Assembly: GCA_021613535.1 (NCBI GenBank) | Contig: CP075494.1 | Location: 13,516,001-13,580,000, forward strand | DNA length: 64,000 nt | Direction of reading: 5' to 3' | From: Adineta vaga | Lineage: Eukaryota; Animalia; Rotifera | Shown here: positions 20,996 to 64,000 of the stretch, piece by piece | How positions within the stretch are numbered: the stretch's first letter is position 1 | How the letters are laid out: each line of letters opens with the position of its first letter | Notes under the pieces: model-generated | Told to the model about the DNA's origin: nothing | The model's input: only the letters and a program-made list of their open reading frames with translations | The model's database searches: none | Translations under genes and position numbers: made by a program

Positions 20996-23900
20996 ATGGC
21001 AAAATCTAAAACTGATACTGGTGAACTCTTTTTAAGTCGTCTCTCGGAAGTTTATACATGTCGTCCAGGTGATAATGTACTTCTTGAATGTTATGTTCGT
21101 CATCAACAAGTTAAATCAGTTGCTTGGTATGCAAATGGTGAATTAGTTGAATTGAAAGGTTTTCGTCTATGGTATCGATATCAACCAACAACAGGTCAAT
21201 GTTCACTTTATCTACGTTCTGTACTTTATTCAGATGAAGGTTCATATTGTTGTATAGCAACAGGTTTAGATGATACAACTGAAATTTTACAACTTCGATT
21301 AGAAATTGATAATCGTAAGAATTTTTTTCTTTTTCTCTTTTTGTCAAATTTTTTATTTTCTGTTTCTTATAGATGATAAAACATGGACTAAAATTCCTAT
21401 CTTACATATGGCTGGATCTGTCTCAGGAGAAGGTAAATATACTGGAATATATCTTTCTATAAACAAGAAAATGAGTTTCTAAATAAATACATCTCTCGGT
21501 ATTTGATGACCTCGATGACATTCAGAAGAAATCTTCTTCTTCTTTTTCTAAAACGTTAACAGAAGCGTGTTTCGTGGTACATTGATTTCTGTATTTTCTA
21601 TCTTCGTCCTTCTTTCTTCGAAGACTTTTCTGGCATCTTATGCTTTACTGCTAATACATATTGTTAACAACCAGTTCTCTTTGCATCTTTCTCGTTTTTT
21701 CTCTCGGCGATGGTGGTAATGTGCTACGGTCTGACCATATACGCAGCCGTATGTTATCCATGCTACGTCGTATAAATTCTATATCAGAACATGCTGTGAA
21801 AGAACAACAAAAAACGATTCTACAAAAATCGAGAAAAAGAAGAGCAAAGATTTTTCTCCGCGACAATGCACTGAGCATATTTGCCGATTGATAACTAATT
21901 AACTAATCGACTAGAAGAAGTGATAGAGAGAGAGGATAGAAGCTTCGAGATAGAGAGAGAGGGAGACAAAATAATATGCTGTTTTGTTTTCTTCGCTAGA
22001 TGAAGAAGAATCAAATACAATCTTTGCAACTCCTCATCAAAAATTGAATACGGAACAAGGTATGTTTCCGGTCCATTGGTACGAACTTCGTCTCGATCGA
22101 CCTCTACCCGATCCAACAACTGTTGACGAAAACAGTCCATTACAACTTTCATGTCGTATAGCTGGTCTTCATATTGACAAATTTGAATGGTTTAGAAATG
22201 GAGAATTGATATCTGTCTCCAATGATAGTCCTCCATCATCATTCGTATCATCAACATCATTAACAACTGATATTGATCATGGCTTATTTTATACATCTTA
22301 TGATACGTTACCAGCACATTTTATTCCTATATTAACTGTTGATCGAACAACAAAACATCGTCATGAAGGTATATATGAATGTCAGGCATCGAATGCTCAT
22401 TATCGCGTATCATCAACATGTAATGTTATTATTAAAGAAATTGAACAACCTGGATTTTCAACTGACGAAGTACATGATATTTTGTTCGTTCATTTTGTTT
22501 TTAATCGAATTTCTTTTTTCTTCTAGGCACGTTCTCCTCGCCCAGTATTTGAAATCAAAAAACGATTAGAAGAGGATCAACAAGAACAAACTCCACCAAT
22601 CGATCGTAAACGTCTTCGATTGGATGAAACAACTAGTAATCGTCAAGTAATACAAAGCCAATTACCATCATTAATCAGTCCTGTTGAATCACCTTTTCGA
22701 ATTTTCGGCGATCAACTTGTACCATCAACAGAATCGAAGAAAGATCCAACGAAAACTGTTACATGGAATGAACAAATTCAAACATTTGTTCAAGTAAATC
22801 TTTTTTGCGTAATTTTTTAATTTTATTCTTCTTATCATCTTTAGAGTAATTTATCAAATGAACCTGATCGATTACTTCCACCTATTCCCGAACGATTAAC
22901 ATCAACATCATCGGATGAAAGTAGTATGTCAGCTGGTGATCTCGAACAACTTCTTCGTTCACATTCATTAATGACAACACAATCATCGATGAAAACTATT
23001 GATACAAGTAGTAGTTCCGATACTGGAAATGAACTAACAGGCATGTCACCAGTATTTTTTCAATTACTTCCATCAAATCTTGAATGTGAAGAAGGTGAAC
23101 GTTTATTACTTTCATGTCAAGTTATAGCTGGTACACAATGTCAAATAAGATGGTTACTTAATGAAATTATGATTTCGGAAAGTGCATTTCGTACTCGACG
23201 TCATTATAATCCGGATACAGGCATTTGTTTTATTATTATTGATCCAACGACAACATCTGATTCAGGATGTTATCGTTTAATTATTTCAAATCAACATGGT
23301 CAAGCTCAATCGATATGTCATGTTCGTATTTTTGTTCGTCAATTACCACCGATGCCTGAAGATGATCAATCAACACGTCTATATTTTGTTAAACCATTAC
23401 CATCAACACCAATCACATGTCGTGATGGTGATACCATTCAATTAACATGTGTTGTTCATGGACGACGACCAATCTATACTCGATGGTTAAAAGATGACCG
23501 ACAAATAATCATTAATGAAAAACAGCAACATACACGTCAAATTTATTTTGATTCTTTAACTGGTAAATCAACATTAACTATTCACGATATATATCCCAAT
23601 GATAGTGGAATATATCGATGTGAAGCAACGAATGATCGAGAAAAAATTAGTACAAATACAACAGTTGATGTTATACGTAAGTATTTAGATTTATGAAATT
23701 ACTCTTTTCTATTCAATTAATCAAATAGATTATCAATATGAAGGTGATAGTGATCGATCTTCTGCTTCGTATATATCCGGTCCACCGAGTGAACCTGAAG
23801 ATGCAAGTGAATTTCAAATGTTACAAGACAAAGCTATATTCAATGAATCTCGTCGTCTTGTCGAAGATTTAGATGCTCGTATTGCTGATTTGTCTCGTGG

Positions 23901-26900
23901 AAATTTAACGACAACTGCAGATAATTCCAGATATGGTAATATAGAGTTTCTCTAAAAACTTTTTTTTCTAGTTGAAAGATAAATATCAGTTCATCCAGTA
24001 AATGTGTTGACACTCAATTGATTTTTGTACATCACAAAAGAATAGATTAACATCATGTATTGAAGATAAAACATCTCTTATATAATTGTCTGTTGTAGTT
24101 GTAATCAATCTATTCTTCATTTGGATTTGTTGCCTTTATCAGATGAAAGATAATATTATTATTCTCTTCTCATTTTTAATTTCTTTTTCTTATATATTAA
24201 ATCCATATCTAATAGATTCAAATAATAGAAAATTAATTAGATCTCTTATCAATATTTAAGTATAATGGTTATTCTTATTTTCATATAAATTTGCCCTTAT
24301 TGACATCATCCATGAAGGAAAAAGACAGTAATATCTATCAGCAAAATTTCCTCTTACTATTCTTTCCTAGAAAAAAAAAATTCTTCGTCTATATGGATTC
24401 TTTTGTTCCACGCCTACTTTCCTTCTATGTTGTGTACGTATATACATATCGGTCATCATCAACATCATCCTTCGCATCTCTACGATATCAACATTAACTA
24501 AAAGAAAGGAAAGAAGAAAAATCGAAGCAAACATGGATATCCAAAAAAAAAAGAAGAAAGAATGTTTTTTCTCAACCTATGACTTTGCAATACTTCTCAG
24601 AAGGATAACGTTCTGTTTCTTTCTCCCAAATTCTCGTCGTTGTTGATTTGTCTTCCTATGATTATATCATCTGTACAGCTGCCTACCAATGACCAAGTAA
24701 ACATGAAGTTTGTCTATCTGTTTTTCAAGCAACATTTGTAGTATTGGGAGATAATAGACAACATTTTCTTTTTCTGTATCTTGCTGCGTTCTATATTCAT
24801 CATCAACATCATACTTAGCTATACAGTCTTGGTATTTGTTTTGCTTATTCATCGAAGTATCGTTTTTCAAATCAAATGGCATTCAATGACGAACGTATAC
24901 CAAAATTTGTTCATGTCGATGATGAAAATAGATTTCAAAGTAATGATTTAATTTTATTTGGTTTCGAACAAGAATTAAAATCGATTACTGTACGTCATGG
25001 TGAATCAGCACGATTTGAAGCAAAAATACATTTAAAATCAACATCATCCAATATTCAAATTGATCGATCTATATTAATAATTGAATGGCGTTTAAATGAT
25101 ATACCATTAATTAATGATGAGAAATCACGATATCGTTTTGATTCAATACCAGAAGAAAATCTCTATTGGATGGACATTCGACAATGTGAACAAGAAGATG
25201 AAGGAGTTTATACGATCTATATTAGTTATGATCATGGAAAATTTCATGAGGAATCGAGCGCTTATCTCTTTGTTGATAGTGAGTTTATATGAAGAAAAAA
25301 TGTTTTTCATTTAGAAAGAATAGATTGATCTGTTGTTAATTAATTGATTTTCAATGTATATAATTGAAAACGATCAATTATTTATCCATTATGTTTGTTA
25401 TTCTTTTTTTTTTCTTTCTTCGTTCTGAGAATCCAAGAAAGATAGAAAATTCTTATAATTATAATTGATTAAATCATTGATATTTTGTTGTGTTTTTTTA
25501 TAGGCTTTATTACTGAAAAGGAGGAGCAACCTGATCAATTAAGCCAACAAGGATTAACTGCCGATGATACGTGGTTTTCTGCCACATCACTTGATCGTTT
25601 TATTCCACCAACAATCACACGACCTCTTCTATCAACTTATCGATGTCATTCGAAAACGAAATTACAACTTCAAGTGGAATATTTTTCTCCATCTATTCAG
25701 TGTCATTGTAGATGGCAAGTACAATATTTAAATGATACTACACCAGGACCCGTACAGAACGGCTCAATAATTAATACAAATTATTCATCAACATTAACAA
25801 TTCATTCAATGACGCCTGAATTACAAGGTACATACACATTTTATTTGGAAAATGTCTATGGAAATGCAATGACACAAACCCATGTTATTGTTGATAAGGA
25901 TTCTAGTGATGACGAATTAGGTAAAGTAGAAAAACAACAATATATCATTTTTCTTCTTCTTTTTTTCCTATCAATAACATTTTAGAATACCAAGAAGTAC
26001 CTGAAGAACCACTATTGAAAAAGCAATATGTTGATGACGATAGTCATCTTCCAATTCATGTTCTTAGTGGAGATACAGAAAATCTTATTATTCATACTGA
26101 ACGTACTCCACAAGTAATGAATTTATTTGTACTATATTTGATTTTTGATTATTATCTATGTAGATTACACGAGATATATCAAGCGAACAAAATTTACAAC
26201 TTCAACCTGGTGACAAAATTGAAATTGAAGATATTAGTATGACAGTTCAATTTAATAAACAACAACAACAACAATTAAAATCTGTAAGTAAAGTGTTAAT
26301 TGAATATGTCAGAAGATTATATAGTAGTCTCCAATAATCTCATGTTTTCTTTTTAAGGAATATGACCAAAATCAATTCCAATTACCAACGACATCAACCA
26401 TTACTGACTCTGTTCAGAGAATTATTCGGGAGGATATTCCGCAAACAACTACAACTACTATTACAACTGAAGAAACAGATATGTTTTCTTTACCATCATC
26501 TACTACATTAGATCAAACTTTGAGTGGTGTTGCACAGTGGTCTCAATTATTTTCGGATAATAATATGCTTCCGTCAATTACAACAGCATTACTACCTAAT
26601 CGTGCCTCACAAATTTCGAATTTATCTCCATCCGCTAATGTATATGAAGAGGAACAATATGTTATGCATCCTGTTGACCAACGTTTAGCAATCAACTCTT
26701 CTGGAACATCTAGTAAAGCTAATACTATTCAACAAGCAACTGTTGAATCAGGTGTACAATCATTCGATGAAGCAGCTCAAGAAACATCTGTCAATATTAG
26801 TCATATACGTCAACAACAATCTGGAGGTGTTAAACGCACAGCTATATCAATTTCGCAACCGAGCACTACGACAGATTTTCCGCTATTAGATGAAACTGCT

Positions 26901-29900
26901 ATTCAACTCGATCAGATTCATCGTCCTACTGCAACAGAATCTGTGCAATATATTGCACCAATCGATATAATTCCATCAACTGGTACCATTGTTAGAACAA
27001 CTACTGCTTTAGGTGAAGAAGAATTGCCCCAAGAAACTTCTATGAATATTAGTCAACTTCGTCAACCAATCGCACAAAGCTTCCCTACACAACAGCAAGT
27101 ACCTATTAATCTTCAACCACGTATTGGTTCTATTCGTATGACTACATCAACGCTTAGTCAAGAAGAACTATCTCATGAAACAGCAATTCGTATCAATCAG
27201 ATACGACAACAGTATCCACAGGCGACCAAACAACAAGTTTTATCTATACTTCAACAATCTTTTGCCGTTACCGAACCGATACTTGAAGAAGCTGCTCTTC
27301 ATCTCGACCAAATTCAACGTACTGAAGCACTGAAAAATGTTCAATACAAATCATCTACTGATATACAGCCATCGATTGCAACCTTCCACACTACACAATC
27401 GGCATTAGGAGCCGACGAAGCATCTCAAGAAACATCACTCAATATATCTCAAATACGACAACCAACTGCTAAACAATTACCAACACACGAAACTCCCAAA
27501 CATCAAGCGTCACTTGTCATACAACCCAGTATTGCAACCGATGCGCCAATTTTTGATCAAACTTCCCTAATAGCTAATCAAACACAACAACCTGTCAAAT
27601 CACAAACAGTTCAAGATCAAGTGTCCGCTCAACTTCCAAATACGGCAGCTACGATTTTCAAAACAGCCTCCGCTTTCGCACAAGACGATTTTCCACAAGA
27701 TACTGCAGTTAACGTTAATCAATTACGTCAACCAGCTGCACAAACTATACCTGCATTAGAACAACCACTAGTAACAGATGAACGTCCAACAGCCACCGGT
27801 ACTATCATGAAGACAACATCAGCTCTAGGTCAAGACGATCTGCCACAAGATACTGCAGTTAACGTTAATCAATTACGACAACCAACTGCACAAACTATTC
27901 CTGCAGTACCTTCAGTCGAACAACCAAGTGTGGTTGTACCAATTCAGCGAATTGAACAACCACTAGTAACAGAAGAACGTCAAACAACCACCGGTACTAT
28001 CATGAAGACAACATCAGCTCTAGGTCAAGAAGATCTCCCACAAGATACTGCAGTTAACGTTAATCAATTACGACAACCAACTGCACAAACTATTCCTGCA
28101 GTACCTTCAGTCGAACAACCAAGTGTGGTTGTACCAATTCAGCGAATTGAACAACCACTAGTAACAGAAGAACGTCAAACAACCACCGGTACTATCATGA
28201 AGACAACATCAGCTCTAGGTCAAGAAGATCTCCCACAAGATACTGCAGTTAACGTTAATCAATTACGACAACCAACTGCACAAACTATTCCTGCAGTACC
28301 TTCAGTCGAAGAACCAGGTGTTGCTTTACCAGTTCAGCGAATTGAACAACCGGTATTAACAGATGAACGTCAAACAGCCACCGGTACTATCATGAAGACA
28401 ACATCAGCTCTAGGTCAAGACGATCTGCCACAAGATACTGCAGTTAACGTTAATCAATTACGACAACCAACTGCACAAACTATTCCTGCAGTACCTTCAG
28501 TCGAACAACCAGGTGTTGCTGTACCAGTTCAGCGAATTGAACAACCGGTATTAACAGATGAACGTCAAACAGCCACCGGTACTATCATGAAGACAACATC
28601 AGCTCTAGGTCAAGACGATCTGCCACAAGATACTGCAGTTAACGTTAATCAATTACGACAACCAACTGCACAAACTATTCCTGCAGTACCTTCAGTCGAA
28701 CAACCAGGTGTTGCTGTACCAGTTCAGCGAATTGAACAACCGGTATTAACAGATGAACGTCAAACAGCCACCGGTACTATCATGAAGACAACATCAGCCT
28801 TGAGTCAGGAAGACCTACCACAAGATACTGCAGTTAATGTTAATCAATTACGAGAACCAACTGCACAAACTATTCCTGCAGTACCTTCAGTCGAACAACC
28901 AAGTGTGGTTGTACCAATTCAACGAATTGAACAACCAGTAGTAACAGATGAACGTCAAACAACCACCGGTACCATCATGAAGACAACATCAGCTTTAGGC
29001 CAGGAAGACCTACCACAAGATACTGCAGTTAATGTTAATCAATTACGACAACCAACTGCACAAACTATACCTGCAGTACCTTCAGTCGAACAACCAGGTG
29101 TTGCTGTACCAGTTCAGCGAATTGAACAACCGATATTAACAGATGAACGTCAAACAGCCACCGGTACTATCATGAAGACAACATCAGCCTTGAGTCAGGA
29201 AGACCTACCACAAGATACTGCAGTTAATGTTAATCAATTACGACAACCAACTGCACAAACTATTCCTGCAGTACCTTCAGTCGAACAACCAGGTGTTGCT
29301 GTACCAGTTCAGCGAATTGAACAACCGATATTAACAGATGAACGTCAAACAGCCACCGGTACTATCATGAAGACAACATCAGCCTTGAGTCAGGAAGACC
29401 TACCACAAGATACTGCAGTTAATGTTAATCAATTACGACAACCAACTGCACAAACTATTCCTGCAGTACCTTCAGTCGAACAACCAGGTGTTGCTGTACC
29501 AGTTCAGCGAATTGAACAACCGGTATTAACAGATGAACGTCAAACAGCCACCGGTACCATCATGAATACGTCATCAGCTCTAGGTCAAGAAGATCTACCA
29601 CAAGATACCGCAGTTAACCTCAGTCAATTACGACAACCAACTGCACAAACTATTCCTGCAGTACCTTCAGTCGAACAACCAAGTGTGGTTGTACCAATTC
29701 AACGAATTGAACAACCAGTAGTAACAGATGAACGTCAAACAACCACCGGTACCATCATGAAGACAACATCAGCTTTAGGCCAGGAAGACCTACCACAAGA
29801 TACTGCAGTTAATGTTAATCAATTACGACAACCAACTGCACAAACTATTCCTGCAGTACCTTCAGTCGAACAACCAGGTGTTGCTGTACCAGTTCAGCGA

Positions 29901-32900
29901 ATTGAACAACCGATATTAACAGATGAACGTCAAACAGCCACCGGTACTATCATGAAGACAACATCAGCCTTGAGTCAGGAAGACCTACCACAAGATACTG
30001 CAGTTAATGTTAATCAATTACGACAACCAACTGCACAAACTATTCCTGCAGTACCTTCAGTCGAACAACCAGGTGTTGCTGTACCAGTTCAGCGAATTGA
30101 ACAACCGATATTAACAGATGAACGTCAAACAGCCACCGGTACTATCATGAAGACAACATCAGCCTTGAGTCAGGAAGACCTACCACAAGATACTGCAGTT
30201 AATGTTAATCAATTACGACAACCAACTGCACAAACTATTCCTGCAGTACCTTCAGTCGAACAACCAGGTGTTGCTGTACCAGTTCAGCGAATTGAACAAC
30301 CGGTATTAACAGATGAACGTCAAACAGCCACCGGTACCATCATGAATACGTCATCAGCTCTAGGTCAAGAAGATCTACCACAAGATACCGCAGTTAACCT
30401 CAGTCAATTACGACAACCAACTGCACAAACTATTCCTGCAGTACCTTCAGTCGAACAACCAAGTGTGGTTGTACCAATTCAACGAATTGAACAACCAGTA
30501 GTAACAGATGAACGTCAAACAACCACCGGTACCATCATGAAGACAACATCAGCTTTAGGCCAGGAAGACCTACCACAAGATACTGCAGTTAATGTTAATC
30601 AATTACGACAACCAACTGCACAAACTATTCCTGCAGTACCTTCAGTCGAACAACCAGGTGTTGCTGTACCAGTTCAGCGAATTGAACAACCGATATTAAC
30701 AGATGAACGTCAAACAGCCACCGGTACTATCATGAAGACAACATCAGCCTTGAGTCAGGAAGACCTACCACAAGATACTGCAGTTAATGTTAATCAATTA
30801 CGACAACCAACTGCACAAACTATTCCTGCAGTACCTTCAGTCGAACAACCAGGTGTTGCTGTACCAGTTCAGCGAATTGAACAACCGGTATTAACAGATG
30901 AACGTCAAACAGCCACCGGTACCATCATGAATACGTCATCAGCTCTAGGTCAAGAAGATCTACCACAAGATACCGCAGTTAACCTCAGTCAATTACGACA
31001 ACCAACTGCACAAACTATTCCTGCAGTACCTTCAGTCGAACAACCAAGTGTGGTTGTACCAATTCAACGAATTGAACAACCAGTAGTAACAGATGAACGT
31101 CAAACAACCACCGGTACCATCATGAAGACAACATCAGCTTTAGGCCAGGAAGACCTACCACAAGATACTGCAGTTAATGTTAATCAATTACGACAACCAA
31201 CTGCACAAACTATTCCTGCAGTACCTTCAGTCGAACAACCAGGTGTTGCTGTACCAGTTCAGCGAATTGAACAACCGGTATTAACAGATGAACGTCAAAC
31301 AGCCACCGGTACCATCATGAATACGTCATCAGCTCTAGGTCAAGAAGATCTACCACAAGATACCGCAGTTAACCTCAGTCAATTACGACAACCAACTGCA
31401 CAAACTATTCCTGCAGTACCTTCAGTCGAACAACCAGGTGTTGCTGTACCAGTTCAGCGAATTGAACAACCGATATTAACAGATGAACGTCAAACAACCA
31501 CCGGTACCATCATGAAGACAACATCAGCTTTAGGCCAGGAAGACCTACCACAAGATACTGCAGTTAATGTTAATCAATTACGACAACCAACTGCACAAAC
31601 TATTCCTGCAGTACCTTCAGTCGAACAACCAGGTGTTGCTGTACCAGTTCAGCGAATTGAACAACCGATATTAACAGATGAACGTCAAACAGCCACCGGT
31701 ACTATCATGAAGACAACATCAGCCTTGAGTCAGGAAGACCTACCACAAGATACTGCAGTTAATGTTAATCAATTACGACAACCAACTGCACAAACTATTC
31801 CTGCAGTACCTTCAGTCGAACAACCAAGTGTGGTTGTACCAATTCAACGAATTGAACAACCAGTAGTAACAGATGAACGTCAAACAACCACCGGTACCAT
31901 CATGAAGACAACATCAGCTTTAGGCCAGGAAGACCTACCACAAGATACTGCAGTTAATGTTAATCAATTACGACAACCAACTGCACAAACTATACCTGCA
32001 GTACCTTCAGTCGAACAACCAGGTGTTGCTGTACCAGTTCAGCGAATTGAACAACCGGTATTAACAGATGAACGTCAAACAGCCACCGGTACCATCATGA
32101 ATACGTCATCAGCTCTAGGTCAAGAAGATCTACCACAAGATACCGCAGTTAACCTCAGTCAATTACGACAACCAACTGCACAAACTATTCCTGCAGTACC
32201 TTCAGTCGAACAACCAAGTGTGGTTGTACCAATTCAACGAATTGAACAACCAGTAGTAACAGAAGAACGTCAAACAACCACCGGTACCATCATGAAGACG
32301 TCATCAGCTCTAGGTCAAGAAGATCTACCACAAGATACTGCAGTTAATGTTAATCATTTACGTCAACCAACTTCAAAAATGATTACTGGAGTATCTAGAA
32401 TTGAACAGCAAGGGTCAGAAGTTGAACAGCCAGCCATTACTGTTGATATGCCAGTTAGGGAAGAAACACGTAATGTTATCGAGGGAAATCGTGCTCTGTT
32501 CGTAGAAGAAGCATCCCCGTATAGTACTACTACGGATACTGAACGAACAACCGGCGTAACTTCTTCTTCATGGGATGTGACTAGTTCAAGTTATGATCAG
32601 GATCAGCATACACAAGTCGTACAATCATCTGAATACGAAGTATCAACTGATTTGAAAGAATCATCAGGGTTTTTACATAGCAATGTGTCAGCATTAGCAA
32701 GTGACGTTGAATATGATATCAATATATCCACTAGCATTGAGGGCTACCAGCAACAACACGGATACAAATCGCAACGACCAACTGTTGTTCAAAGTCCTAC
32801 ATCACTGGTGGAAAGCGAAGAACATACTCAGTCTACTACAGTAAATCAACGTCGACAAATGGTTCCATCTGTTCAAAAAGAAGAAGAAAGAAAAGAAAAA

Positions 32901-50900: not shown

Positions 50901-53900
50901 TCATCAAGGTGAATATTCTGTACAAGCAACGAATTCAGGTGGAACTGTTAAATCAAAGAAAACAAAAGTTACTGTACAGAAAAAACCAGAATTCATCAAA
51001 TTACCTCAATCACAAACAATTAAAGATGGACAAGCAGTGATATTCGATGCACAAATTGATGCTTATCCGCAACCAAAAGTCACATGGTAAGAATTGATTC
51101 GTTTCGATAAGAATGAAGATAACAGTGTACACATGTTTAGGCTTAAAAATGGTAAACCATTAACACCTGATCTTGGTTTTGAAAGTCAATTTGATGCTAA
51201 AACGGGTCAAATTACTCTTAAACATAAGGCAGCAACAAATAAACAATCAGGTGAACTTATCTGTCGAGTAGAAAATGCTGCTGGTACGACCGATGCATCA
51301 GTTACACTCGATGTGCAAGGTAAACTAATATTCAGACAAGAAATCACATACGTTTTATATTTTATTTCTATAGCATTACCAATTATTACGAAGAAATTAG
51401 CTGATCAAGAAGTGATGATTGACAATGAAATTCGTTTTGTTGTTGAAATCACTGGTTCACCTACACCGACGATTTCGTGGTCGAAAGATGATACTCCAGT
51501 AACAGCCGATGTGGATCATATTATCGAATCTGATAATACAATACATACATTAATCATTAAAAATGTTAAATCAACTGATGAAGGTAAGTATCGTGTTGTA
51601 GCTGAAAATCTTCTTGGTCAAGTAGAATCAACTGGTCAATTAACTGTTCTTGAACAACCATTAATCGATCAACCATTTGGTGATATTACTCAACCGATTG
51701 GGTCAGATGTTACTCTTAAATGTCGTGTTACGGGTGGTCGACCTAAAGCAACAGTCACATGGTTGAAGAATGGTAAAGAATTCAAAGGTGATGAACGACA
51801 TATAATCACTTCATCACCTGATGGTACATGTGAATTATTGATAAAATCACTTGATGAAACAGAAAATCAGGCGAAATATACATTAATAGTGAAAAATAAA
51901 GTTGGACAAAAAGAAATTCATTCAACGATAACGGTAAAAGCTTCATTAGACTTTCTTCAAGAATTAAAAGATCAAGATATTCTTGCACAATCACCATGTG
52001 TTTTAACTGTGGAAACAAATGGTATACCAAAACCAACAGTTAAATGGTAAGTTCATTCATTGAAGAATAAATTTTTAATTATATGTTTGATATTTTCATA
52101 GGTTTTTCAATGATCAAGAATTGAAGAATACTCCAAAGACAAAACTTGAATCCAAACAAAATATTCATACATTAACATTACCAAAAGTTGATTTACCTGA
52201 TGATGGTGTTTATAAATGTGTTGCTACCAATCCAGATGGAACCATTGAAACAAAAGCACACATCTCTGTTTGCAGTATGTTGATGGCATTAGAATCGAAT
52301 ATTTGTAATCTGTTTTATTCGTTTCATTGTAGCTAAACCAAAAGTCGATGGTAAAGTCAATGATGTTACCGTTCAAATCAATGAACCAGCTGAATTACGT
52401 ACAAAATTTAGTGCCATACCAAAACCAACAATTGCTTGGTTTGTATATAGACTATCTGTCAACTTCATGTCATATCATCTATTTTTAGGTATAAAGCGAA
52501 TGATCTCAATACTCCATTGACTTCAACTGATAATATTGAAATAACTGAATTACCCGATGGCACAAGTGTTCTTCGAGTGAAAAAGACAGAGTTAACCGAT
52601 GCTTCTGCATATATTGCTCGTGCAACTAATAAAGTTGGTGAAATTGATTCTAAGATCAATTTGATTGTTAAAGAAGTGAAACCACAAATCTTATCTGATA
52701 TAGTCAATGTCAATGCTATTCGTGACGAAGTAGCACAATTTAGTATTAAGGCAACTGGAAATCCACAACCAACAATTCGTTGGTTTAAGAATGATAATGA
52801 AGAACTTCTTGAAACTAATCAAGATTTTGAATTTATTCATGATACATCATCGGATACGTTTACACTCAAAATCAATAAATGTCGACCAGAACATCAAGCT
52901 GATTATTCAGCTATAATAGCCAATTCAGGTGGTACAGTAAAATCGAAAAAAGGCAAATTAGTTGTAACAAAATCACCGGAATTTATTGAAAAACCTGTTT
53001 CTATTGATGTCAATGAAAATGATGCTAGTGAATTTCGAGCGAAAATAGATGCTTATCCACCAGCAAAAATTACTTGGTTATTTGAAGGTAAACCTGTAAC
53101 TGCAAAAGATGGATTTGATATACAAACTGATCAAGCTACGGGTACATCAGTATTAACAATTAAACAAACATTACCTAAACATATAGGAAAACTTACAATT
53201 AAAGCAGATAATTCAACAGGTTCAATTGAAGAAAGTGTTCAATTAGCTGTAAAAACTGGACCAAAGATTACTAAAAAACCAACCGATATTGAAGCTTTAC
53301 TACATACGGATGCAGTATTTACTATTGATGTAGCTGGCTCACCAAAACCAGAAATTGAATGGATTCATCGTGACCTATCAATTAAAGTTTCGGATAAATA
53401 CGAAATTATCGAAGAAAGTGCAACAGTAACAAAACTTATTATTCATGATGTCACATCTGAAGATGAAGGATCAATTCAAATCAAAGTTAAAAACGCATTA
53501 GGTCAAACCGATGTTACTGCACAGTTGAAAGCACTTGAAACGCCACGAATCGAACCACAATTGACTGACCAAGAAGTAACATTGAATCAGCCACTTGTTC
53601 TCAAAACAAATGTATACGGTCGACCAAAAGTCGATGTTCAATGGTTAAAAGATCAAAAACCATTAGCAGCATCTGATCGTATCAAAATCGAACGTAATGA
53701 AGATGAATGTACATTGACAATAGCAAATATTAAAGAAGAAGATATTGGTACATATACATTAACAATTAAAAATAAACTTGGCAAAGCAGATTCTGTATCA
53801 AATATTAAAGTTACTGCTTCATTACGATTTCTCAATCAATTGAATGATCTCGATATTATTCAAACTTCAAATGGAATTCTGTCTGTTGATTGTGAAGGTG

Positions 53901-56900
53901 TACCAAAACCGAAATTAACTTGGTATGTTTATTAAAGAAATAATCTCCATGGAGTTATTTTCTATACTTTTCTTTCTTTTAAAGGTATTTCAATGATACA
54001 GAAATTAAATCTAATCAAAAGACACGTGTTGATACCAAAGGCTCAACTAGTACATTGACTATCAATAAGGCAGATATGGTCGATATTGGTATTTATAAAG
54101 TTGTAGCTGATAATGGAAAAGAAAGAATAGAAACACAAGCTAATGTTGATGTTTGTGGTATGTAATCATTGTCAATTGTTTAATAGATAGCATTTCCAAT
54201 GAAATATATGGATTATTCGATCTAAATAATTCATTTGTTTATTTTTAGTCAAACCAAAAGTGGATGGTAAACCAACTGATGTTACTTGTTTATTAAATGA
54301 AACAGCAAAACTCAGTATCAAATTTACAGCTATACCAAAAGCAACAGTTACATGGTATAAAGCTGATGGTACAGAAGTACAAGCGGATGATCGTATTCAA
54401 ATGACTACCGATGATAATGGACAATCGACATTAACTATTACAAATGCTACACCACAAGATACTCAAGCATATATAGCTCGTGCAACGAATAAAGTTGGCT
54501 CGGTCGATGGAAAAGTCAATTTAAATGTGAAAGGTATAGTAGATAAAATGAATAAAACTTGATGAGAACTGTTTCTTTTACTTTCTGCCTCTTCTGTAGA
54601 AGTCAAACCAACCTTAAAGAATGATCTTGAACCACAAACTGTAAATGTTGGCGATGAACTTATCTATCGTCTTCTCGTTGATGGTCGTCCGACACCGACA
54701 ATTAAATTCTATAAAGATGGTAATGAAATCGGTCCCGTAACTATTGAACAGTCAACAACGCCAGGTGATAGTATTGTTACAGCTATTCTTCGTATTCCTC
54801 AAGCTGCTACAACTGATCAAGGTGAATATCAAGCTTCGGTTGAAAATCCAGCAGGTGTTGTTAAAACGAAGAAAGTAAAAGTTACTGTTCAACAATTGCC
54901 TGTTTTTCTTCAAACACCTCAAGATGTATCAGTGAGTCAAGGCAAAGAAGTCACATATGAAGCACAACTTTCAGCATTTCCAATACCAAAAATAATCTGG
55001 TTACTTAATGGTAAACCATTAACAGCCAATGCTGATTGTGCAATTACATTTGATAATGCCACACAAAAAGCAACATTAACCTTACGTAAAATTGATGCTG
55101 ATAAACATGCAGGAATTATTACCTGTCAAGCTGAAAATGCTGCAGGCAAAATTACACATGATGCTAAACTTAATGTTTTAACAGCACCGAAAATCTTGAA
55201 AGGTTTGAAAGATGAAAGTATTATTGAAGGACAAGATATTACATTATCAATTGAATCAAGTGGACATCCTGCACCAACAGCACAATGGTTCTTGAATGAT
55301 AAACCAATCGTACCGACTGATCAACATTATGAAGTAATTATACCAAAAGAAGGACATTTATATGAATTAAAAATCAAACAAACAAAATCTACTGATGAAG
55401 GTATTTATAAAGTTATTATGACAAATTCAGAAGGTGAAATTACAAGTCAAGCTAATTTAAATGTTTATATTGCACCTGTCATGAAATCTCTTCCACCAAA
55501 AATCGATGGAGTTCAAGGTCAACAAATAATTATCTCATGTCAAATAACGGGTCGTCCAAAACCAGAAATTGTTTTCTTAAAAGATAAAAAAGATGTTATG
55601 ACATTAGAAGATAAAGCTCGTTTTCAAATTGACTACGATGAACAAACAGGTAATGTACGTTTGATTATTTCTGATGCGAAAGAAGAAGATCATGGTAAAT
55701 ATACAATTCGTGCTAAGAATGCAGCACAAACAATTGAAGAACAAACAGTGGTAAATGTATCAGCACAATTATCTTTTACTGAACAACTTCAAGATACTGA
55801 TGTTATTAGTGGTCAAAACTTAACATTAACTTGTCGTTGTCAAGGTATTCCTAAACCAACAATAAAATGGTATCAAAATGATACGGAAATTAAATCAACA
55901 ACAAAACAAAAGATTGAATCAAAACCAGATGGAACTCAAACAATAACAATCAATCGTGTTGATTTAACCGATGGTGGAAAATTTAAAGTTATTGCTACGA
56001 ATGAACAAGGAACAATTACATCGGAATGTCAAGTTGATGTTTTAATGAAACCTAAAATTGAAGGTAAAGTCCAAGATGTTCAAGTCGTTATTGGTGAACA
56101 AGCCCAATTAAATGTAAAATTATCTGGTATTCCAAAACCAGATATTCAATGGTTGAAAAATGGTCAACCATTTGATATTGATAATCAACGAATTAAACTT
56201 ATTGAAAAAGATGATGTATATTCATTAGTTTTTGAAAGTACAATTATCGACGATAAAGCTGCCTATACATTAAAAGCAACGAATAAAGCTGGTGACGTTG
56301 AATCACCGAAGATTAATTTGAATATTACATCAATTCAACCGAAAATTAAAACCGATTTACAACCAACGTTGAATGTAACAAAAGATGAACCGATTGTTTT
56401 GACTATTCAAGCAGATGGAAAACCAAAACCACAAGTCAAATGGTTTAAAGGTAGCGATGAAATATCACCCGATCAAGTGGGTGTTCAAATGCTTGAAGAA
56501 GGTGAAAATACATATAAATTAATTATTGAAAAATCAACAGAAAAAGATCAAGGAGACTACACTGCACTTATTCAAAATACTGGTGGACAAGTTAAATCAA
56601 AGAAGACAGCTGTTACAGTTACTAAACTACCTGAATTTGTTACAAAACCAGAAGATACAACAGTCAAACAAGGTGATACCACTACGATTGAATGTCAAAT
56701 TGATGCACTTCCATTACCGAAAATTACATTATTACGTGATGGTAAACCTTTGACACCTAAAGATGGTATTGAACAAACATTTGATGCTGCTACTCGTCGT
56801 CTTATAATTACAGTTAAGAATGCTCGTGTAGATCAAACTGGCACATTAACATGTAAACTTGATAATTCCGTTGGTTCAGCTGAAGCGTCATTTAAATTAA

Positions 56901-59900
56901 ATGTTTCTGCTGCTCCTGTTATTTCAAAAGGTTTAACAGATCAAGAATGTTTGATTGATAAAGAACTTCGTTTAACTATTGTTACATCAGCAAGTCCTGT
57001 ACCAACTGTAAAATGGTATAAAGATAATGTTGAATTGACTAATATTGGCACAAAGGTTAACGATGATACATTTGAATTAATTATTCCAAATGTTAAACCA
57101 GAAGATCAAGGAAGTTATAAGGCGGTTGTATCCAATGAACTTGGCGAAAAAGAAACTCAATGTAAAGTAACAATACTTGAACCTGCTGAATTAAAATGTG
57201 ATTTTGCTGAACAACAAACAATTCAAGTTGGAGACATTCTTCAACTTCAATGTCATGTTAGTGGACGACCATTACCAGAAGTGACATGGACAAAAGATGG
57301 TAAAGAAATAAAAGCATCAGATCGTATAGAAATTGTAAAGAATGCTGATGGAACTTGTTCATTAACAATCAAACAAGCAACATCAGATGATAAAGTAAGA
57401 GTAATAAATAAATAGTTTATTGATTTCATCATGAACACAAATTCTTCTCTTTTGTAGGGTGTTTATAAAGTTATTTGTAAGAATAAATTACAGACACGTG
57501 AAGCACAAACACAAATTCTTATTTCATCACCATTAAAATTTAATACAACATTGAAAGATACTGTTGCACAAGTTGGACAAAGTGTTACATTCGAAGTTGA
57601 TTGTGAAGGTTTACCAAAACCAACTATTAAATGGTAAGATTTATCTATCATTCATTTATTCAATACAACAGATATATTCATACTCCATATTTTTGTTTAA
57701 TCTCAGGCTCTTCAATGGTCAAGAAATAACACCATCAGCTAAATATAAGATTGAATCTAAAGGAAATTTGAATAAACTTACAGTACCAAAAGTTGATCTC
57801 ATCGATACTGGTGTATATGAAGTTGTTGTTTCAAATGGTATTGATACAATTAAAAGTGAATCAAAATTGGATGTTTCTATTAAACCTAAAGTTGAAGGTA
57901 AAAAGGAATAATTCAAATAGACTTTTTTTTAACTAGATTTTTTCTCTATCTAGGTAAACCATCTGATGTTAATGTTAATATCAACGAATCAGCTAAACTT
58001 CAATGTAAAATTTCGGGTTCTCCAATACCTACTATTGTATGGCTTAAAGATGGTCAACCATTGCAACCATCTGATAATATTACTATTCAAACAGAAGCCG
58101 ATGGTACACAAATACTTCTTTTTAAATCAGCTCAACTAGCAGATAAAGGTAGTTATACATGTCAAGCAACGAATATTGGTGGTACAAGTGAAGTTAAATT
58201 AAATCTTAATGTTCAACAAGTAAAACCAACATTAAAATCTGATCTTGCAAAAGATATTATTGCTCAAGCTGGTGAACCTATTTCACTTTCTATTAAAGCA
58301 TCCGGTACTAAACCACAAGTAAAATGGTACAAAGATGGTGAAGAAATCATTGAAACAGTTGAAGAAGAATATGAAATGGTCGAAGAAGAAGAAACCTATA
58401 CATTGTTAATGAAACGTGCACAACCAAAAGATAGTGGAGAATATCAAGCCGTCATTACAAATGATGTTGGACAAGTAAAATCAAAGAAAATTAAAGTACA
58501 AATTCAAAAAGCACCACAATTCAAAAAGAAACCAGAAGCCATGCTTAATGTTAAAGAAGGTGAACAAGCACGTTTTGAATGTGAATTTGAGGGTAATCCA
58601 ACGCCAAAAGTTTCTTGGTTACGTGATGGAAAACTATTAACACCAAAAGATGGTTTTGAAATCAAAACAGATGCAGCAACAGGCAAAAGTATTTTAACAA
58701 TCAATCAATCGACACCGAAACATTCAGGTCCAATTACAGTACGTCTTGAAAATTCAGTTGGTACACCTATTGAAGAAATTGTTCAATTAAATGTTGAAAC
58801 TACACCACAATTATTACAAAAACCAACAGCAACATGTGAAGCACATTTGAATCAAACTGCTTCAATTGCATTTAAATGTTTAGCAACACCTAAACCAACA
58901 ATACGTTTATTTAAAAATGATATTGAAATTGAATTAACTGGTGATCATTATGAACTTGTTCCTAGTGCAACTGATGCAACTTCATATGAGATCAGAATAA
59001 AAAATGTTCAAATCGAAGATGAAGGAAATTATCGTATTCGTATTGAAAATGCTTTGGGAAATATTGATGCAAATGTTCAAGTTACAACAGTTGATAATGT
59101 TTCAATAACAACATCAGCTCATGCAATTAATACTGATTTAAAACAACATGATACATTAACACTTGAATATACTGTTACTGGTCGACCTAAACCTGATATT
59201 ACATTTATGAAAGATGGCAAAGAAATTAAACCATCAGCTAAAATACAAATAACTTATGATGAAACAACTAATATTTGTCGATTAGTTACAACAGATGTTG
59301 GACAAGAAGATCAAGGTGTGTATACATTAATTGCTAAGAATAAATTAGGTAAACAAGAAAGTCAACCAATAAAAATTAATGTTACTGCACCAATTACTGT
59401 TAAAACAACTTTACCAGAAACAATTGATGCTGTTCTCGGCGAACAAATAACAATGACTATTGAAGCATCAGGTAGATTATTGATTTAAAAAAATTAATTT
59501 TTGATTTTTTTCAAAAAATATTCTTTTTCCTATTCAAGGTATTCCTCAACCTAAAATTACATGGTTATGTAATGGTCAACCTCTTAAATCGTCACCGAAA
59601 CATAAAATTGAAACATCAAAAGAAAATCCAAATTTAACGACTTTAACCATTACGAAATTAGATCATGCTGATGTTGGTAAATATACTGCTGTCATTGATA
59701 ATGGTCTCGAAAAAATAGAAGCCAATAGTACATTAAATATTCATGCAAAACCGAAATTAGAATCGAAATTAGAAACATCATTAACATTTAATATTGGTGA
59801 ACAAGGTCAAATTCCAATACGTGTTAGTGGAGAAGATAATATCATTACTTGGTTTAAAGATTCTCAACCAATTACATTTGATGATCGCATTCGAATTGTC

Positions 59901-62900
59901 ACAGAAGAAAATAATACTTATAAATTAGTTATAGATGATCTTCGTTCTGAAGATAAAGGTCTTTATTCAATGCATATTGAAAATAAAGGTGGAAATTTAG
60001 ACATTAAAACAACAGTTAATATTAAAGAACAAAAGCCACAAATTCTTGCTGACCTTAATGATTCTCCAGCAGCAAATGCTGCCAAAATAGGTGAAGAATT
60101 TTCATTAGAAATTCGTGCACAAGGTAAACCACGTCCTCAAGTATCATGGACACTTAATGGTCAAGAATTACCAGCTGATTCACCAGATTATGATTTAATT
60201 ATAACTGAAGATGGTCTTTATCGTCTTGTATTTCGTCAATTTAATGAACGTTATATTGGTGAATATCAAGCTGTTGTTACAAGTTCTGCTGGTACATTAA
60301 AAACGAAAAAAGCTAAAGTAACTGGTCAACAAGTACCTATGTTTACTCAAGAACCACCTCAATTTCTTCAAGTTAAAACGGGTGAAAAACTAACTGTTGA
60401 ATGTACAGCTAAAGGACATCCAACACCGAAAATTACATGGTTACGTGATGGAAAAGTTTTAACGAATAAGGACGGTTTTGATATTAAAATGGATCAAGCA
60501 ACTGGCCAAGCAACATTTATTATTCCAAGTGCAAATATTAAACATACAGGCAAATATGAATGTAAAGTTGAAAATCAATATGGTACACATACATCAGAAA
60601 TTAATATTGATGTTCTTGGTAAGTAGAATAAATAAAACTTTCAGTAGAGATAGTTCGATTTTGCTTTAGCTCCACCTACTGCTCAACAGAAAATGCAAGA
60701 TTTTGAAGTATCTCGTGGACAAGAAGTAACTATTACTGTTACGGCTGATGGTAGTCCATTACCGACATGTACATGGTATCATAATGAGAAACCACTTGCT
60801 GTACAACCAGATCGTATTGTTATTATTGATGATGGAGCAACACATACTTTGAAATTACTTGACGCTCAATTAACTGATGATGGTCAATATAAAGTAAGAT
60901 AAGAAAGAATACTATTTTGCTTTTTGCAAAATCATTGCTTTTCTTCTTCGTTATTTCAAGGCTATCATTGAAAATCAAATGGGTAAAACAGAATTAGTCA
61001 GTCAAGTTACAGTCATGGGTAAGTTCAGCATTTTATAAATCCTTTGCATATACTGTTTATATTATTTTACATTCCACTGTGATCTAATTTCGAATATTGA
61101 TCAGTATTCATATTTTTATTTGAAATCAATTCTATCTTAGACGTACCTGATATCTCTTCGGAACCAATTGATGTTCGTGTCACTCAAGGTGGCTCATGTA
61201 CGCTTGAATGCCAAGCTTCAGGTAAACCTTTACCTGAAGTAAAATGGACAAAGAGTGGCAAAGAAATCAAATCAACTGAAAGTCTTTTACTTGAGTCAAC
61301 ACCCGATGGTACTCATCGTTTGACTATAAATAATGCTCAATCAGATCATGCAGGACAATATATTGCTAACGTCAAACATAAAATTCGAGCTCAACAAATG
61401 ATTTTCAATGTTACTGTTACAGGTATGAACGAAGAACAATATATAAATGTGTCTTTCTAATGTTAAACTATGCATAGGATAGGAATAATTAAAAAACGAA
61501 TCTTAGATCATAAATAAAAAAAGTATATTCTATCTCTAACAAAACATTCATACGTGTTATCCGATACTACTTCCAATTCATTACATCTTCTCGATTAAAA
61601 CCTAAAACAAAATCGAAATTTCAAACTAATACCTTTTCTTTTAAAAATCTCTAGCTCCATTAACCTTGAAACAAACACCAACAGATCTTAACGTGCTACA
61701 AACGCAAAATGCTCTCATTACATTTGAAGTCGACGGTTTACCAAAACCCACTATCACTTGGCTCTTCAACGGAACACCCATCCAATCATCAGCCAAATAC
61801 AAGATGGAAACAAAAGGAAATCAAATCATTCTAAACGTTAACAAAACAGATTTTGTCGATTCAGGCATATATACAGCTGTCATTGATAACGGAATTGAAA
61901 AAATAGAAGTTCCCGTGAAAATGAACGTTGGCGGTAATAACACCTAACTTAGACTATCCATTGAATTTATTCTATTTTCTCTTAAAATAATTTTAGTCAA
62001 ACCCAAAGTGGAAGCAGCTAAGCCAGCTAATGAACAATCATGTGTTATTGGTCAAGATACTCAGATCACATGGAAATTTAGTGGTGTTGAGAAACCACAA
62101 GTAACATGGCTCTTCAAAGGACAACCACTTACAACTAATGAACGATATCAAATCACCGAAGGTGAAGATGGAACATCGACACTAGCCATCAAGAGTGCTG
62201 AACTCACTGACAAAGGTGTTTACACTGCGAAAGCAACAAACGCAGTGGGTGAAGCAGAAGCAAAAACAACACTCAACATTGCTGGTATCAAACCAGTGAT
62301 CACGAATGATCTCGAAGGTACATTACAAGCAACGAAAGGTGAATCAATGACAATCAAACTACAAGTGACAGGTACACCTCGACCTGATGTCATTTGGTGT
62401 CGAGGAAATGATGATCTTGTACCAAGTGATCGTATTCAAGTAGTAGCACCAGCAAGTGAAGGTGATGACACATACACACTGACAATTCTGAATGTTCAAC
62501 CAGAAGATCAAGGTGATTATTCAGCTAAAATAAATAATGTTGGTGGATCACTCAAAACAAAGAAATGCAAAGTGACCGTTACAAGTAAGTTATCGAACCT
62601 TTCATATGCTTTTTCTAGTCTTACTTTTAATAGAATTACCCGTCTTTGTGAGCAAACCAACAGCTCAAGAAGTCAAACAAGGTGAAACAGCGGTGTTCCA
62701 AACAAAGATCGATGGATATCCCACACCTAAAGTCACATGGCTTCTCAATGGCAAACTATTGACAGCGAAAGAAGGCGCGCAAGTCGAACTCAATGCTGCA
62801 ACTGGTGATGCCAAACTATCAATTCCTAAAGTTGATCTACAACAACATTCAGGCACAGTTACATGTCGACTCGAGAATCCACATGGGACTCAGGAAGAAA

Positions 62901-64000
62901 CTGCACGACTCGATATTCTTGCTGCACCACTCATCACCACTCAACTGCCGAAACAAGAAGAAACAGTGAGTGGCAAAGATGTGACACTTCGAGTCGTTGT
63001 TCGAGGTTCACCACGACCTGAAGCACAATGGTTCTACAATGACACACCGGTACCTGCAGAGAATACCACATTTGATGAAGAAAAGAGCGAATATCAACTC
63101 ACAATAAAACAAGCCACAGTTGCTACAAGTGATGGAACATATCGTGTTGTGTTGAAGAATGATCTTGGAGAGAGTGAATCAACACCATGTGTATTGACAG
63201 TACTGGAACCAGTGAAGGTAACAAAGACAGCACCAGCGAGTGATGTTGTCGACTTGAAAGTGGGTGAAGCATTTGAATTATCGTTTGATGTTGACGGTAA
63301 AGAAGCACCAAAAGTACAATTGACCAAGGATGGCAAGGAAGTGAAGTTCAGTAGTGTTGAAGGTGTGAAACATGTATATTCGATTGGTGAAGTAAAACCG
63401 GAACATCAAGGCGTATACAAGTTGACAGCAAAGAACAAAACATCAACAGAAGAAAATATTGTAACATTGAAAGTGACAGGTATGTCATTTTGATTATTAA
63501 CTAAAACTCGTACCCAAGTTTCGATGCGTTGCTGCGTGAGGTATCTTCTTCATACTCCATATGATATTCGTAGATACTATAATCTTTGCATTTCCGATTT
63601 GTAAATAGCAACAATGCTATACGAGAAACATACCAATCATACCGAACTATAACGTCATTCAGTACCATAATCCATTATGTATGTGAATATAAATGAAAAG
63701 CTAGCTTGTTCATAAGATATGGCCTGCAGAGATAGTCGGAAGTTTTCCATGAAACTTAAAATATGTATATTTCTTACGATTATTCATACATATTTTAGCC
63801 CCACTAAATATTACACAATCATTAACTGATACGAATGTTCTTCTTGGACAAAATGCAACTCTATCAATCATCTGTGATGCTTTTCCAGCACCAAAAGTAA
63901 CCTGGTAAGTTATCTATAGAGCCCCCCAAAGAGGTCCAACGTCTATGATCATTATTTTTTCCAAAGGTTTTCGAATGACACCGAATTGAAAACATCCGCA
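20996..64000 (+). CDS. Giant titin/twitchin-like multi-Ig muscle protein, 5' portion; continues past the window end
   Basis: Dozens of I-set Ig domains (P.F...L, G.P.P.v.W, D.G.Y.c.A.N..G) joined by frame-consistent GT-AG introns at the junctions checked. Two giant repeat exons (26358-33471, 33678-42547). No stop in the spliced frame before the window end. No Fn3 or kinase domain seen. Confidence 0.92.
24876..25278 (+). CDS. Probable alternative first coding exon of the titin-like gene (one Ig domain)
   Basis: Starts MAFNDERIPKF with an in-frame TAG upstream and no phase-1 acceptor nearby. Encodes an Ig domain (FEQELKSITVRHGESARFEA...DEGVYTI). Its phase-1 donor at 25278 fits the 25504 acceptor, as does the upstream donor at 23935. 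Confidence 0.65.
27796..32370 (+). repeat. Coding tandem repeat: 195-bp (65-aa) unit, 23 full copies plus a partial
   Basis: The CCGGT anchor recurs every 195 bp from 27796 to 32281. Unit: TGTIMKTTSALGQEDLPQDTAVNVNQLRQPTAQTIPAVPSVEQPGVAVPVQRIEQPVLTDERQTA. Confidence 0.98.
35140..42200 (+). repeat. Coding Ala/Glu/Lys-rich repeat array built from 18-bp (6-aa) modules
   Basis: Modules AEQEKK, AQEAKQ/E, AAEEKK, AADAKK, AEEAKL, AAEAKK plus an ALQ triplet, combined into 18-, 33-, 51- and 69-aa units. Confidence 0.97.
47290..47640 (+). other. Twitchin/MyBP-C-like inter-Ig regulatory linker
   Basis: IDYKSILRK...GGPDWGKLKK...PGWQYHLKH...GRRSRSGS between Ig blocks. Resembles the recalled DF/Y-x-S-x-L-K/R-K and PDW-x-x-L motifs of twitchin-family linkers. 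Confidence 0.55.
48165..64000 (+). repeat. Six-Ig-domain super-repeat (~575 aa), at least 7 complete copies
   Basis: The marker G-x-(V/L)-K-(S/T)-K-K-x-x-V-T recurs at ~49040, 50940, 52930, 54850, 56580, 58470, 60290 and 62540. Six Ig domains lie between markers in the intron-free 54896-57415 ORF. Confidence 0.9.

Follow-up and report, generated by a model that had tools for sequence, protein, structure and literature searches.

Locus and Gene Model

The DNA analysed here, referred to throughout as the window, is a stretch of 64,000 nt from the bdelloid rotifer Adineta vaga (G000:C5:13516001-13580000). It carries the 5′ 58% of a giant gene on the plus strand that encodes immunoglobulin (Ig) domains and, past the window end, fibronectin type III (Fn3) domains, with two long arrays near its N-terminus. 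The genome measures 100.8 Mb in 6 contigs and has ∼31% G+C and short GT..AG introns. The following 50 kb were joined to the window, resulting in a 114-kb extended stretch in which positions above 64000 are counted as window plus overhang.

Exons were chained by dynamic programming with GT-AG splice sites and a consistent reading frame. Database searches and structure predictions were carried out on a single exon or open reading frame (ORF) each, and domain counts were placed on the exon model by coordinates. The donor of the exon here called the spring exon was placed at 42547, following the split of an Ig domain; the exon model itself had 42574. The resulting gene runs from the ATG at 20996 to a TAA at 98132-98134 of the extended stretch (G000:C5:13614134), 34,134 bases beyond the window end. 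According to the exon model it comprises ∼91 exons and 21,461 codons, corresponding to a protein of ∼2.4 MDa, within a span of 77 kb that is 83% coding and has a median intron length of 63 nt. The product ends in '...EEYIKNVW' at this stop. The exon chain inside the window accounts for 12,502 of the codons.

A domain census with a local hidden Markov model (HMM) on ORF pieces yielded ∼140 Ig and 20 Fn3 domains over the whole gene, in the order I x 137, FFF, II, FFF, II and F x 14 (I, Ig; F, Fn3). Linkers between domains are short (median 4 residues), and only eight exceed 25 residues. Six N-terminal and 62 later Ig domains fall within the window. An earlier reading of this DNA, referred to as the sequence-only reading, had described an Ig cluster, a 65-residue repeat, an array of E, A and K and an Ig super-repeat, linked by frame-consistent splicing into ∼12,000 residues with 65-70 Ig domains. 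All blocks were recovered at the positions it gave, the two different arrays do stand in series, a GT-AG chain in one frame was found, and both figures agree with the counts above. Its statement that Fn3 domains are absent holds up to the window edge; beyond it, 20 Fn3 domains lie at 90197-97924, and the absence was an effect of that edge.

N-Terminal Ig Cluster and Repeat Exon

The exon opened by the ATG at 20996 codes for an Ig domain, the first of a cluster of six (20996-25920, plus strand) that was identified with Pfam I-set and Ig_3, the local Ig HMM and the exon model. The domains are located at 21029-21286, 22095-22433 (with an insert), 23049-23330, 23400-23672, 24963-25250 and 25608-25892. 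Unique linkers separate them, and several small exons in the cluster are uncertain. Neither a signal peptide at the N-terminus ('MAKSKTDTGELF...') nor a transmembrane stretch was found. Two short linker exons (25986-26283, plus strand) lead from the sixth Ig domain to the repeat exon; they were placed by the exon model and by the relatives L026, a related locus, and P0006, a Rotaria sordida protein.

The repeat exon (26358-33471, plus strand; 2,371 codons) consists of degenerate ancestral units of ∼100 residues, a 24 x 65-residue array and a unique acidic tail. The 24 tandem units, located at 27795-32474, are exactly 65 residues long and have a mean pairwise identity of 91.5%; T (14%), Q (13%), V (11%) and P (10%) head the composition of the array. 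No Pfam family matched the repeat exon, and HMMER found relatives in only 19 proteins among 1.84 billion representative proteins. The two of these that bear organism names are from the bdelloids R. sordida and R. socialis, in line with the earlier view of the arrays as lineage specific.

A ∼100-residue unit with a conserved motif is common to 13 aligned relatives. In the related locus L028 (L028:11931-13772), a ∼97-residue unit with the same ancestral motif forms a separate tandem array of near-identical copies, so that the repeat region has been amplified independently in different rotifer lineages. The 65-residue array of A. vaga is a local amplification of this shared ∼100-residue material. 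AlphaFold, run on the repeat region with a 14-row alignment, returned a mean predicted local distance difference test (pLDDT) score of 45 and one short helix; the region is predicted to be mostly disordered. A possible exon of 84 nt (33535-33618, plus strand) between the two giant exons is uncertain; if it is omitted, one intron of 206 nt (33472-33677) joins these exons in frame.

Spring Exon and the PEVK Position

The spring exon (33678-42547, plus strand) encodes a conserved unique head ('NLLPLATMPD...'), a short remnant of ∼200 residues rich in P, E, K, Q and T, a core of A, E, K and Q, and a tail of unique sequence. The first third of an Ig domain is formed by the 32 codons at the end of the exon (42452-42547). 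A word search with the head gave no match and, given its length filter and low-complexity words, is uninformative. The core, referred to as the A/E/K array, spans 2,220 residues (35402-42061) with 32% A, 25% K, 24% E and 11% Q; it contains no proline and a single glycine. Pairs of K followed by E at i+3 or i+4 number 586, compared to 294 ± 13 in shuffled sequences, and pairs of E followed by K number 368, compared to 293 ± 14. The periods of the array are 6, 18 and 51, not 7, and leucine makes up 4%. A 300-residue piece was predicted by AlphaFold to be all helix (pLDDT 81). Minus-strand and alternative-frame ORFs in the array were set aside as by-products of low complexity, and Pfam matches to NETI, Cullin_Nedd8 and Plasmodium_HRP as composition artefacts.

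These are the properties by which a domain of the single alpha-helix (SAH) type is recognized: helix-favouring charges, i to i+3/i+4 pairs and no hydrophobic heptad seam. SAH domains behave as constant-force springs that unfold at less than 30 pN, and both they and the helical linkers of myomesin are reversible low-force springs (PMC4183817). The A/E/K array resembles them in being charged, helix forming and proline free, in its excess of opposite charges at i+3/i+4 and in its predicted continuous helix. It differs in being ∼20 times longer (2,220 vs. ∼100 residues), in consisting of one third Ala with almost no Arg, and in the periods given above. Its calculated length is ∼330 nm when helical and ∼800 nm when unfolded (0.15 and 0.36 nm per residue).

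In relatives, PEVK-like arrays lie directly before the conserved 'EQDFLRPNFTLRLKP' Ig start. Their proline content is 13% in L026, 18% in L027, 10% in L046, 20% in R. sordida and 6% in R. socialis, compared to 0.4% P and 31% A at the same place in A. vaga. The R. socialis array closes with a short 'EAKAKKAAEAKAK' stretch. Since the proline-rich arrays of the relatives are found at the same site with conserved flanks, the A/E/K array occupies the PEVK position. At the site of an elastic segment of PEVK type, A. vaga has the proline-free array and the ∼200-residue remnant; the arrays of the relatives at the orthologous site are PEVK-like (P 6-20%). The novelty of the gene lies in its two spring modules and chiefly in the helical array without proline that takes the PEVK position.

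The order of these blocks is kept in relatives: a FAM199X-like gene, the Ig cluster, the repeat region and the spring follow one another in four rotifer contigs. The Ig tandem after the spring is visible in L026 alone among the four, as the others end too early. In the window, the FAM199X-like gene is located at 17036-18112 (Pfam 1.2e-17), and L026, L027 and L028 have the same neighbour.

Probable Continuity Across the Long Intron

Given the freedom with which splice sites can be chosen, frame-consistent splicing is by itself weak evidence that the blocks belong to one gene. Most joints have additional support. The giant exons are ∼200 nt apart and have good splice sites. In L026, the homologue of the sixth Ig domain and the linker share one ORF. 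The proteins CAF1496878.1 of R. sordida (P0006) and CAF4318905.1 of R. socialis (P0008) lead from the linker through the repeat region and the 'NLLPLATMPD' head to the spring (PEVK). Spring (PEVK) and Ig start form one ORF in L026 and L027. The one junction lacking such support was 42935-43910, and 17 related metagenome loci were gathered to examine it.

The Ig domain that starts at the end of the spring exon (HMM positions 1-31, E 1e-5) is completed in the next exon (42607-42802, plus strand), which matches HMM positions 32-90 (E 8e-13; Pfam I-set positions 32-90). The short linker exon 'SMAVQLQAPPKKTSTVEATVPSPN' (42859-42934, plus strand) follows. It ends in GA before the donor GTAAGT, as do its orthologues in L026 and L032, and when read through unspliced gives GAG TAA, an immediate stop. 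The intron at 42935-43910 (plus strand) is, with 976 nt, the longest of the window. Its last ∼75 nt are conserved in relatives and the remainder is unalignable; this block (43836-43910) is ∼85-90% identical across the window, L026:20560-20635 and L032:∼1830-1903. The block possibly represents a splicing-regulatory element or, alternatively, the 5′ untranslated region of an internal transcript. A conserved coding start was rejected, since its in-frame ATGs are non-homologous and a 4-nt indel separates the species. The exon behind the intron (43911-44078, plus strand) was found in 17 metagenome loci; it encodes a conserved linker containing 'SPRRRSSTLVIPEGKP', which would be a basophilic-kinase-type site.

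The related sequence L046 covers 14,352 nt from the start of a 40.8-kb contig and reads across this junction. It is one intron-free frame of 4,783 codons that leads from a PEVK-like array through '...AQPEPT ITWY...', 'SLKTTTPTKKQITTATEATSDE' and 'TSLTTAS...QRRSSGLVIPEGKP' into 35 Ig domains. All four introns of 42548-44129 are missing from it, and these introns are present in 12 or more other relatives. The junctions of L046 agree with the predicted exon borders.

The same intron is where the locus could be divided into two genes or two main products: a spring protein of ∼6,500 residues with the Ig cluster, both arrays and one Ig domain, ending at the TAA that overlaps the splice donor, and, separately, an Ig/Fn3 filament with its own promoter in the intron. 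Such a division would fit the length of the intron (1.4-1.8 kb in L026, L032, L040 and L044), the in-frame stop at the donor in two species and the conserved 75-nt block just before the acceptor. Moreover, the Rotaria annotation divides the locus into several genes, and in Sls an early polyadenylation site gives a short isoform (PMC9886278). A further related sequence, L037, is intron free and cDNA-like, with 3,400 codons and 34 Ig domains. At its start (L037:1-300), ∼100 nt rich in purines lead to an ATG ('MQSGRRVSTQG') that has an in-frame stop upstream and is spliced onto the homologue of exon 43911.

Against a division, L046 is continuous from PEVK across the junction into its 35 Ig domains, the donor GTAAGT and the acceptor score well with matching phases in both species, the 75-nt block holds no conserved coding start, and the N-terminal product alone would be left without any thick-filament end. 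We consider two separate genes or main products unlikely. The sequence-only reading had named them as the alternative to its single frame; a relative reads through the junction, and what L037 hints at is an isoform with an internal start. As extra isoforms beside the full-length form, the split products are quite possible. L037 possibly represents an internal-promoter isoform without the N-terminal Ig cluster and the springs, and gives some backing to the notion that something begins after the long intron. The intron may thus carry an internal start for a spring-less isoform, and a short N-terminal product beside the full-length form is likewise possible, as with the early polyadenylation site of Sls.

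Ig Tandem, Fn3 Block and Twitchin-Type Gene

From 42452 to 64000, 62 I-set Ig domains and no Fn3 domains were found; 61 of the 62 make up the tandem at 44130-64000 (plus strand; median linker 4 residues). Between ∼48168 and 61000, Ig domains six positions apart are 33% identical over a background of 23-26%, representing an old 6-Ig periodicity. From 61997 onward, where the first near-identical unit is located, identity at the 6-Ig period rises to 94-100%, and the run passes the window end. Each near-identical unit is built of exons of 106, 173, 588 and 846 nt (1,713 nt in total). About eight such units are followed by two partly identical units and then by ∼17 divergent Ig domains. In-frame skipping is possible for whole 1,713-nt units and also for the 588- and 846-nt exons. 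The pure Ig super-repeat of the sequence-only reading was confirmed within the window by a 6-Ig periodicity and the absence of Fn3; past the window, the Fn3 block follows.

Introns before the 106-nt exons (63480-78021 of the extended stretch) measure 319, 543, 1812, 928, 1075 and 404 nt, and the exons are 94-100% identical. A unique Gly/Lys/Arg-rich insert of 124 residues, containing 'RRSRSGSR', lies between Ig domains at 47253-47645 and recalls the N2 inserts of titin.

The C-terminal block (90197-97924 of the extended stretch), within the last 2,450 codons, has the order FFF-II-FFF-II-F x 14 and thus 20 Fn3 and 4 Ig domains. The Fn3 domains are old, with a mean identity of 29% and an intracellular muscle-type consensus. 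The best PDB match of the block is A-band titin in the thick-filament structure 8g4l (2.5e-91); the best match outside titin reaches 1e-19. No Pfam kinase was detected in the gene, and the kinase exons of a twitchin-type gene on contig 6 gave no tblastn match in the 114-kb stretch. Extension past the window, as proposed in the sequence-only reading, thus brought to light the Fn3 domains but no kinase.

The twitchin-type gene covers ∼20 kb at G000:C6:5279500-5300000 and encodes N-terminal Ig domains, Fn-Fn-Ig repeats, a kinase and C-terminal Ig domains. The best PDB matches of its kinase are the Aplysia (1kob, 1.4e-48) and C. elegans twitchins. Close to the 3′ end of the gene there is an acidic Ala/Pro/Glu-rich ORF. 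Contig 3 has a matching Fn3 cluster (G000:C3:10580667-10589248) that looks like a duplicate from an old genome doubling. In the AV20 assembly of A. vaga, with six scaffolds, chromosomes 1, 2 and 3 are homoeologous to 4, 5 and 6 (PMC8494291), and the pairing of Fn3 clusters between contigs 3 and 6 fits this homoeology.

Twitchin and projectin start with Ig clusters, and an Ig group of N-terminal appearance follows the long intron of the giant gene. The sequence-only reading had called this group a twitchin-like head, and the whole gene could on these grounds belong to the twitchin/projectin family or be a fusion with a member of it. However, the PDB matches of the head are to titin (including Z1Z2), DSCAM and Robo, not to twitchin, and its identity to the twitchin-type Ig domains of contig 6 is 23-28%, which is the background level. 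In addition, Fn-Fn-Ig super-repeats and a kinase are missing from the giant gene, and the true twitchin-type gene is a separate one on contig 6, with an Fn3 cluster on contig 3 that looks like its duplicate. The label of a twitchin-like head is not supported, and twitchin/projectin membership or fusion is so improbable that we regard it as largely refuted.

The Ig and Fn3 domains also match DSCAM, contactins and RPTPs in the PDB, as they would in a non-muscle extracellular protein of hemicentin or DSCAM type, and near-identical tandem units are difficult to assemble, so that the arrays might have been inflated by mis-assembly. An extracellular protein would have to be reconciled with the absence of a signal peptide and of a transmembrane stretch, with titin as the top PDB match in all three regions tested, with the intracellular muscle-type Fn3 consensus and with the PEVK-like springs of the relatives, a hallmark of titin. 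Regarding mis-assembly, each array has conserved flanks, and its two ends share one frame. An extracellular protein or inflated arrays are very improbable. Domain content and PDB matches instead agree with the placement of the gene in the titin class, as the sequence-only reading had it.

Further Candidates and Neighbouring Sequences

As extra exons of the giant gene, the ORFs that lie past its TAA (extended stretch, 99596-101445) were considered and rejected: they gave no family hit, their inclusion would need a micro-exon of 5 nt, and a signal peptide stands at their start. The 3′ neighbour, ∼1.6 kb after the stop (99700-101450 of the extended stretch; G000:C5:13615700-13617450), encodes the signal-peptide protein 'MAWLLLLLLSIVTFICGQ', which has no Pfam match. 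No second copy of the spring head or of the N-terminal Ig exon was found in the same genome. An Ig-rich locus on the minus strand (G000:C2:3866000-3889000) was considered as a duplicate; with 24-31% identity to the N-terminal Ig exon it is a different gene. Over 42350-48300, contigs of DNA runs from 2013 show scattered single-base differences to the window, which look like allelic variation within the same strain.

Comparison with Known Titins

The I-band part of chordate titin has its counterparts in I-connectin/D-titin of arthropods and Ce-titin of C. elegans, and the A-band part in projectin/twitchin (PMC12198301). [quoted passage not shown] With its C-terminal Fn3 cluster and without a kinase, the rotifer gene has the layout of I-connectin/D-titin and does not represent a new class. 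The combination that the sequence-only reading took to be new is therefore, in its overall layout, ordinary and of a known invertebrate titin type, and only its two spring modules are not matched by a known family. In our assessment, the locus is probably a single bdelloid gene that is the counterpart of invertebrate I-band titin (I-connectin/D-titin, the Sallimus class).

Like Sallimus/I-connectin, the rotifer gene product is giant and kinase free, with N-terminal Ig domains, springs of unique sequence, a long Ig tandem and a C-terminal Fn3 cluster, and the A-band part is contributed by a separate projectin/twitchin gene. It differs from Sallimus in having 20 Fn3 domains (14 unbroken) instead of five, and in its springs, which directly follow six Ig domains and the main one of which is proline free and helical, not PEVK. 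The candidate elastic regions of C. elegans TTN-1, too, are short tandem repeats specific to its lineage and segments predicted to be helical or coiled coil, as far as the title of Flaherty et al. (2002) indicates. However, TTN-1 contains a kinase, which the rotifer gene does not, and the repeat sequences are unrelated.

With the I-band of vertebrate titin, the gene shares tandem Ig super-repeats, unique inserts, a spring between Ig blocks and near-identical duplications of Ig blocks, and in the PDB it is matched best by Ig domains and A-band Fn3 domains of titin. It lacks the Ig/Fn3 A-band super-repeats, the kinase and the M-band part, and the A/E/K helix replaces PEVK. Twitchin and projectin have the same domain families (I-set Ig and muscle-type Fn3), but their defining Fn-Fn-Ig super-repeat and kinase are absent from the titin gene and present in the gene on contig 6.

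Several observations weigh against the assignment to a single gene of the Sallimus class. The assignment itself is based on architecture, not on sequence orthology to Sls or TTN-1. The ∼35-residue Ig linkers of kettin type are missing (median linker 4 residues). Upstream of Sls and TTN lie SESTD1-like and CCDC141/zormin-like genes ('connectitin'; PMC12198301), but within 21 kb upstream of the rotifer gene no SEC14 or spectrin domain, and hence no SESTD1/zormin-like gene, was found. In the gene model, several small 5′ exons with weak acceptors are uncertain; three exons (21373-21432, 23744-23997, 33535-33618) and one acceptor (24827) are doubtful, and the lengths of the tandem arrays depend on correct assembly. 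As to continuity, L046 supports one polypeptide as transcript-like evidence from a relative rather than from A. vaga; that it is cDNA derived we infer from its absent introns, the sample type not being on record. The sequencing runs that contain 50-82% of the words of the stretch cover the introns of 42350-48300 without any splice joints; these runs are therefore DNA and provide no RNA evidence for this genome. Finally, the ATG of L037 at the site of the long intron may give rise to shorter isoforms.

Proposed Mechanics

No rotifer titin was found in a literature search. The location of the protein in the sarcomere, its mechanics and its full-length expression in A. vaga are here inferred from the gene and from known titins. 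By analogy with Sallimus and TTN-1, the N-terminus would be anchored at the Z-line or dense body, and the Fn3 block would dock onto the end of the thick filament. The middle of the molecule would act as springs in series. Straightening of the tandem Ig domains and the disordered, entropic segment would yield first; the helical array would then unfold and refold at a low, nearly constant force, as SAH domains do. In short, the entropic PEVK spring of titin would have been swapped for an SAH-like array of ∼2,200 residues, in series with a disordered repeat of 24 copies. This proposal draws on the analogy with SAH domains, and we put it forward tentatively, as a possibility somewhat short of even chances.

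The split of titin into a kinase-free I-band titin and a separate twitchin holds in a bdelloid rotifer too. Units that can be skipped or duplicated, as in the 6-Ig run, provide a simple model for the tuning of length by duplication or splicing. With PEVK-bearing close relatives on the one hand and the A/E/K array of A. vaga on the other, between conserved flanks, a natural pair is available for relating spring chemistry to passive tension. If the proposed mechanics are true, passive force would be set by helix-coil unfolding at near-constant force and not by a random coil, representing a natural swap of spring physics within an otherwise conserved titin, and this may relate to how extremely bdelloid bodies shorten and extend.

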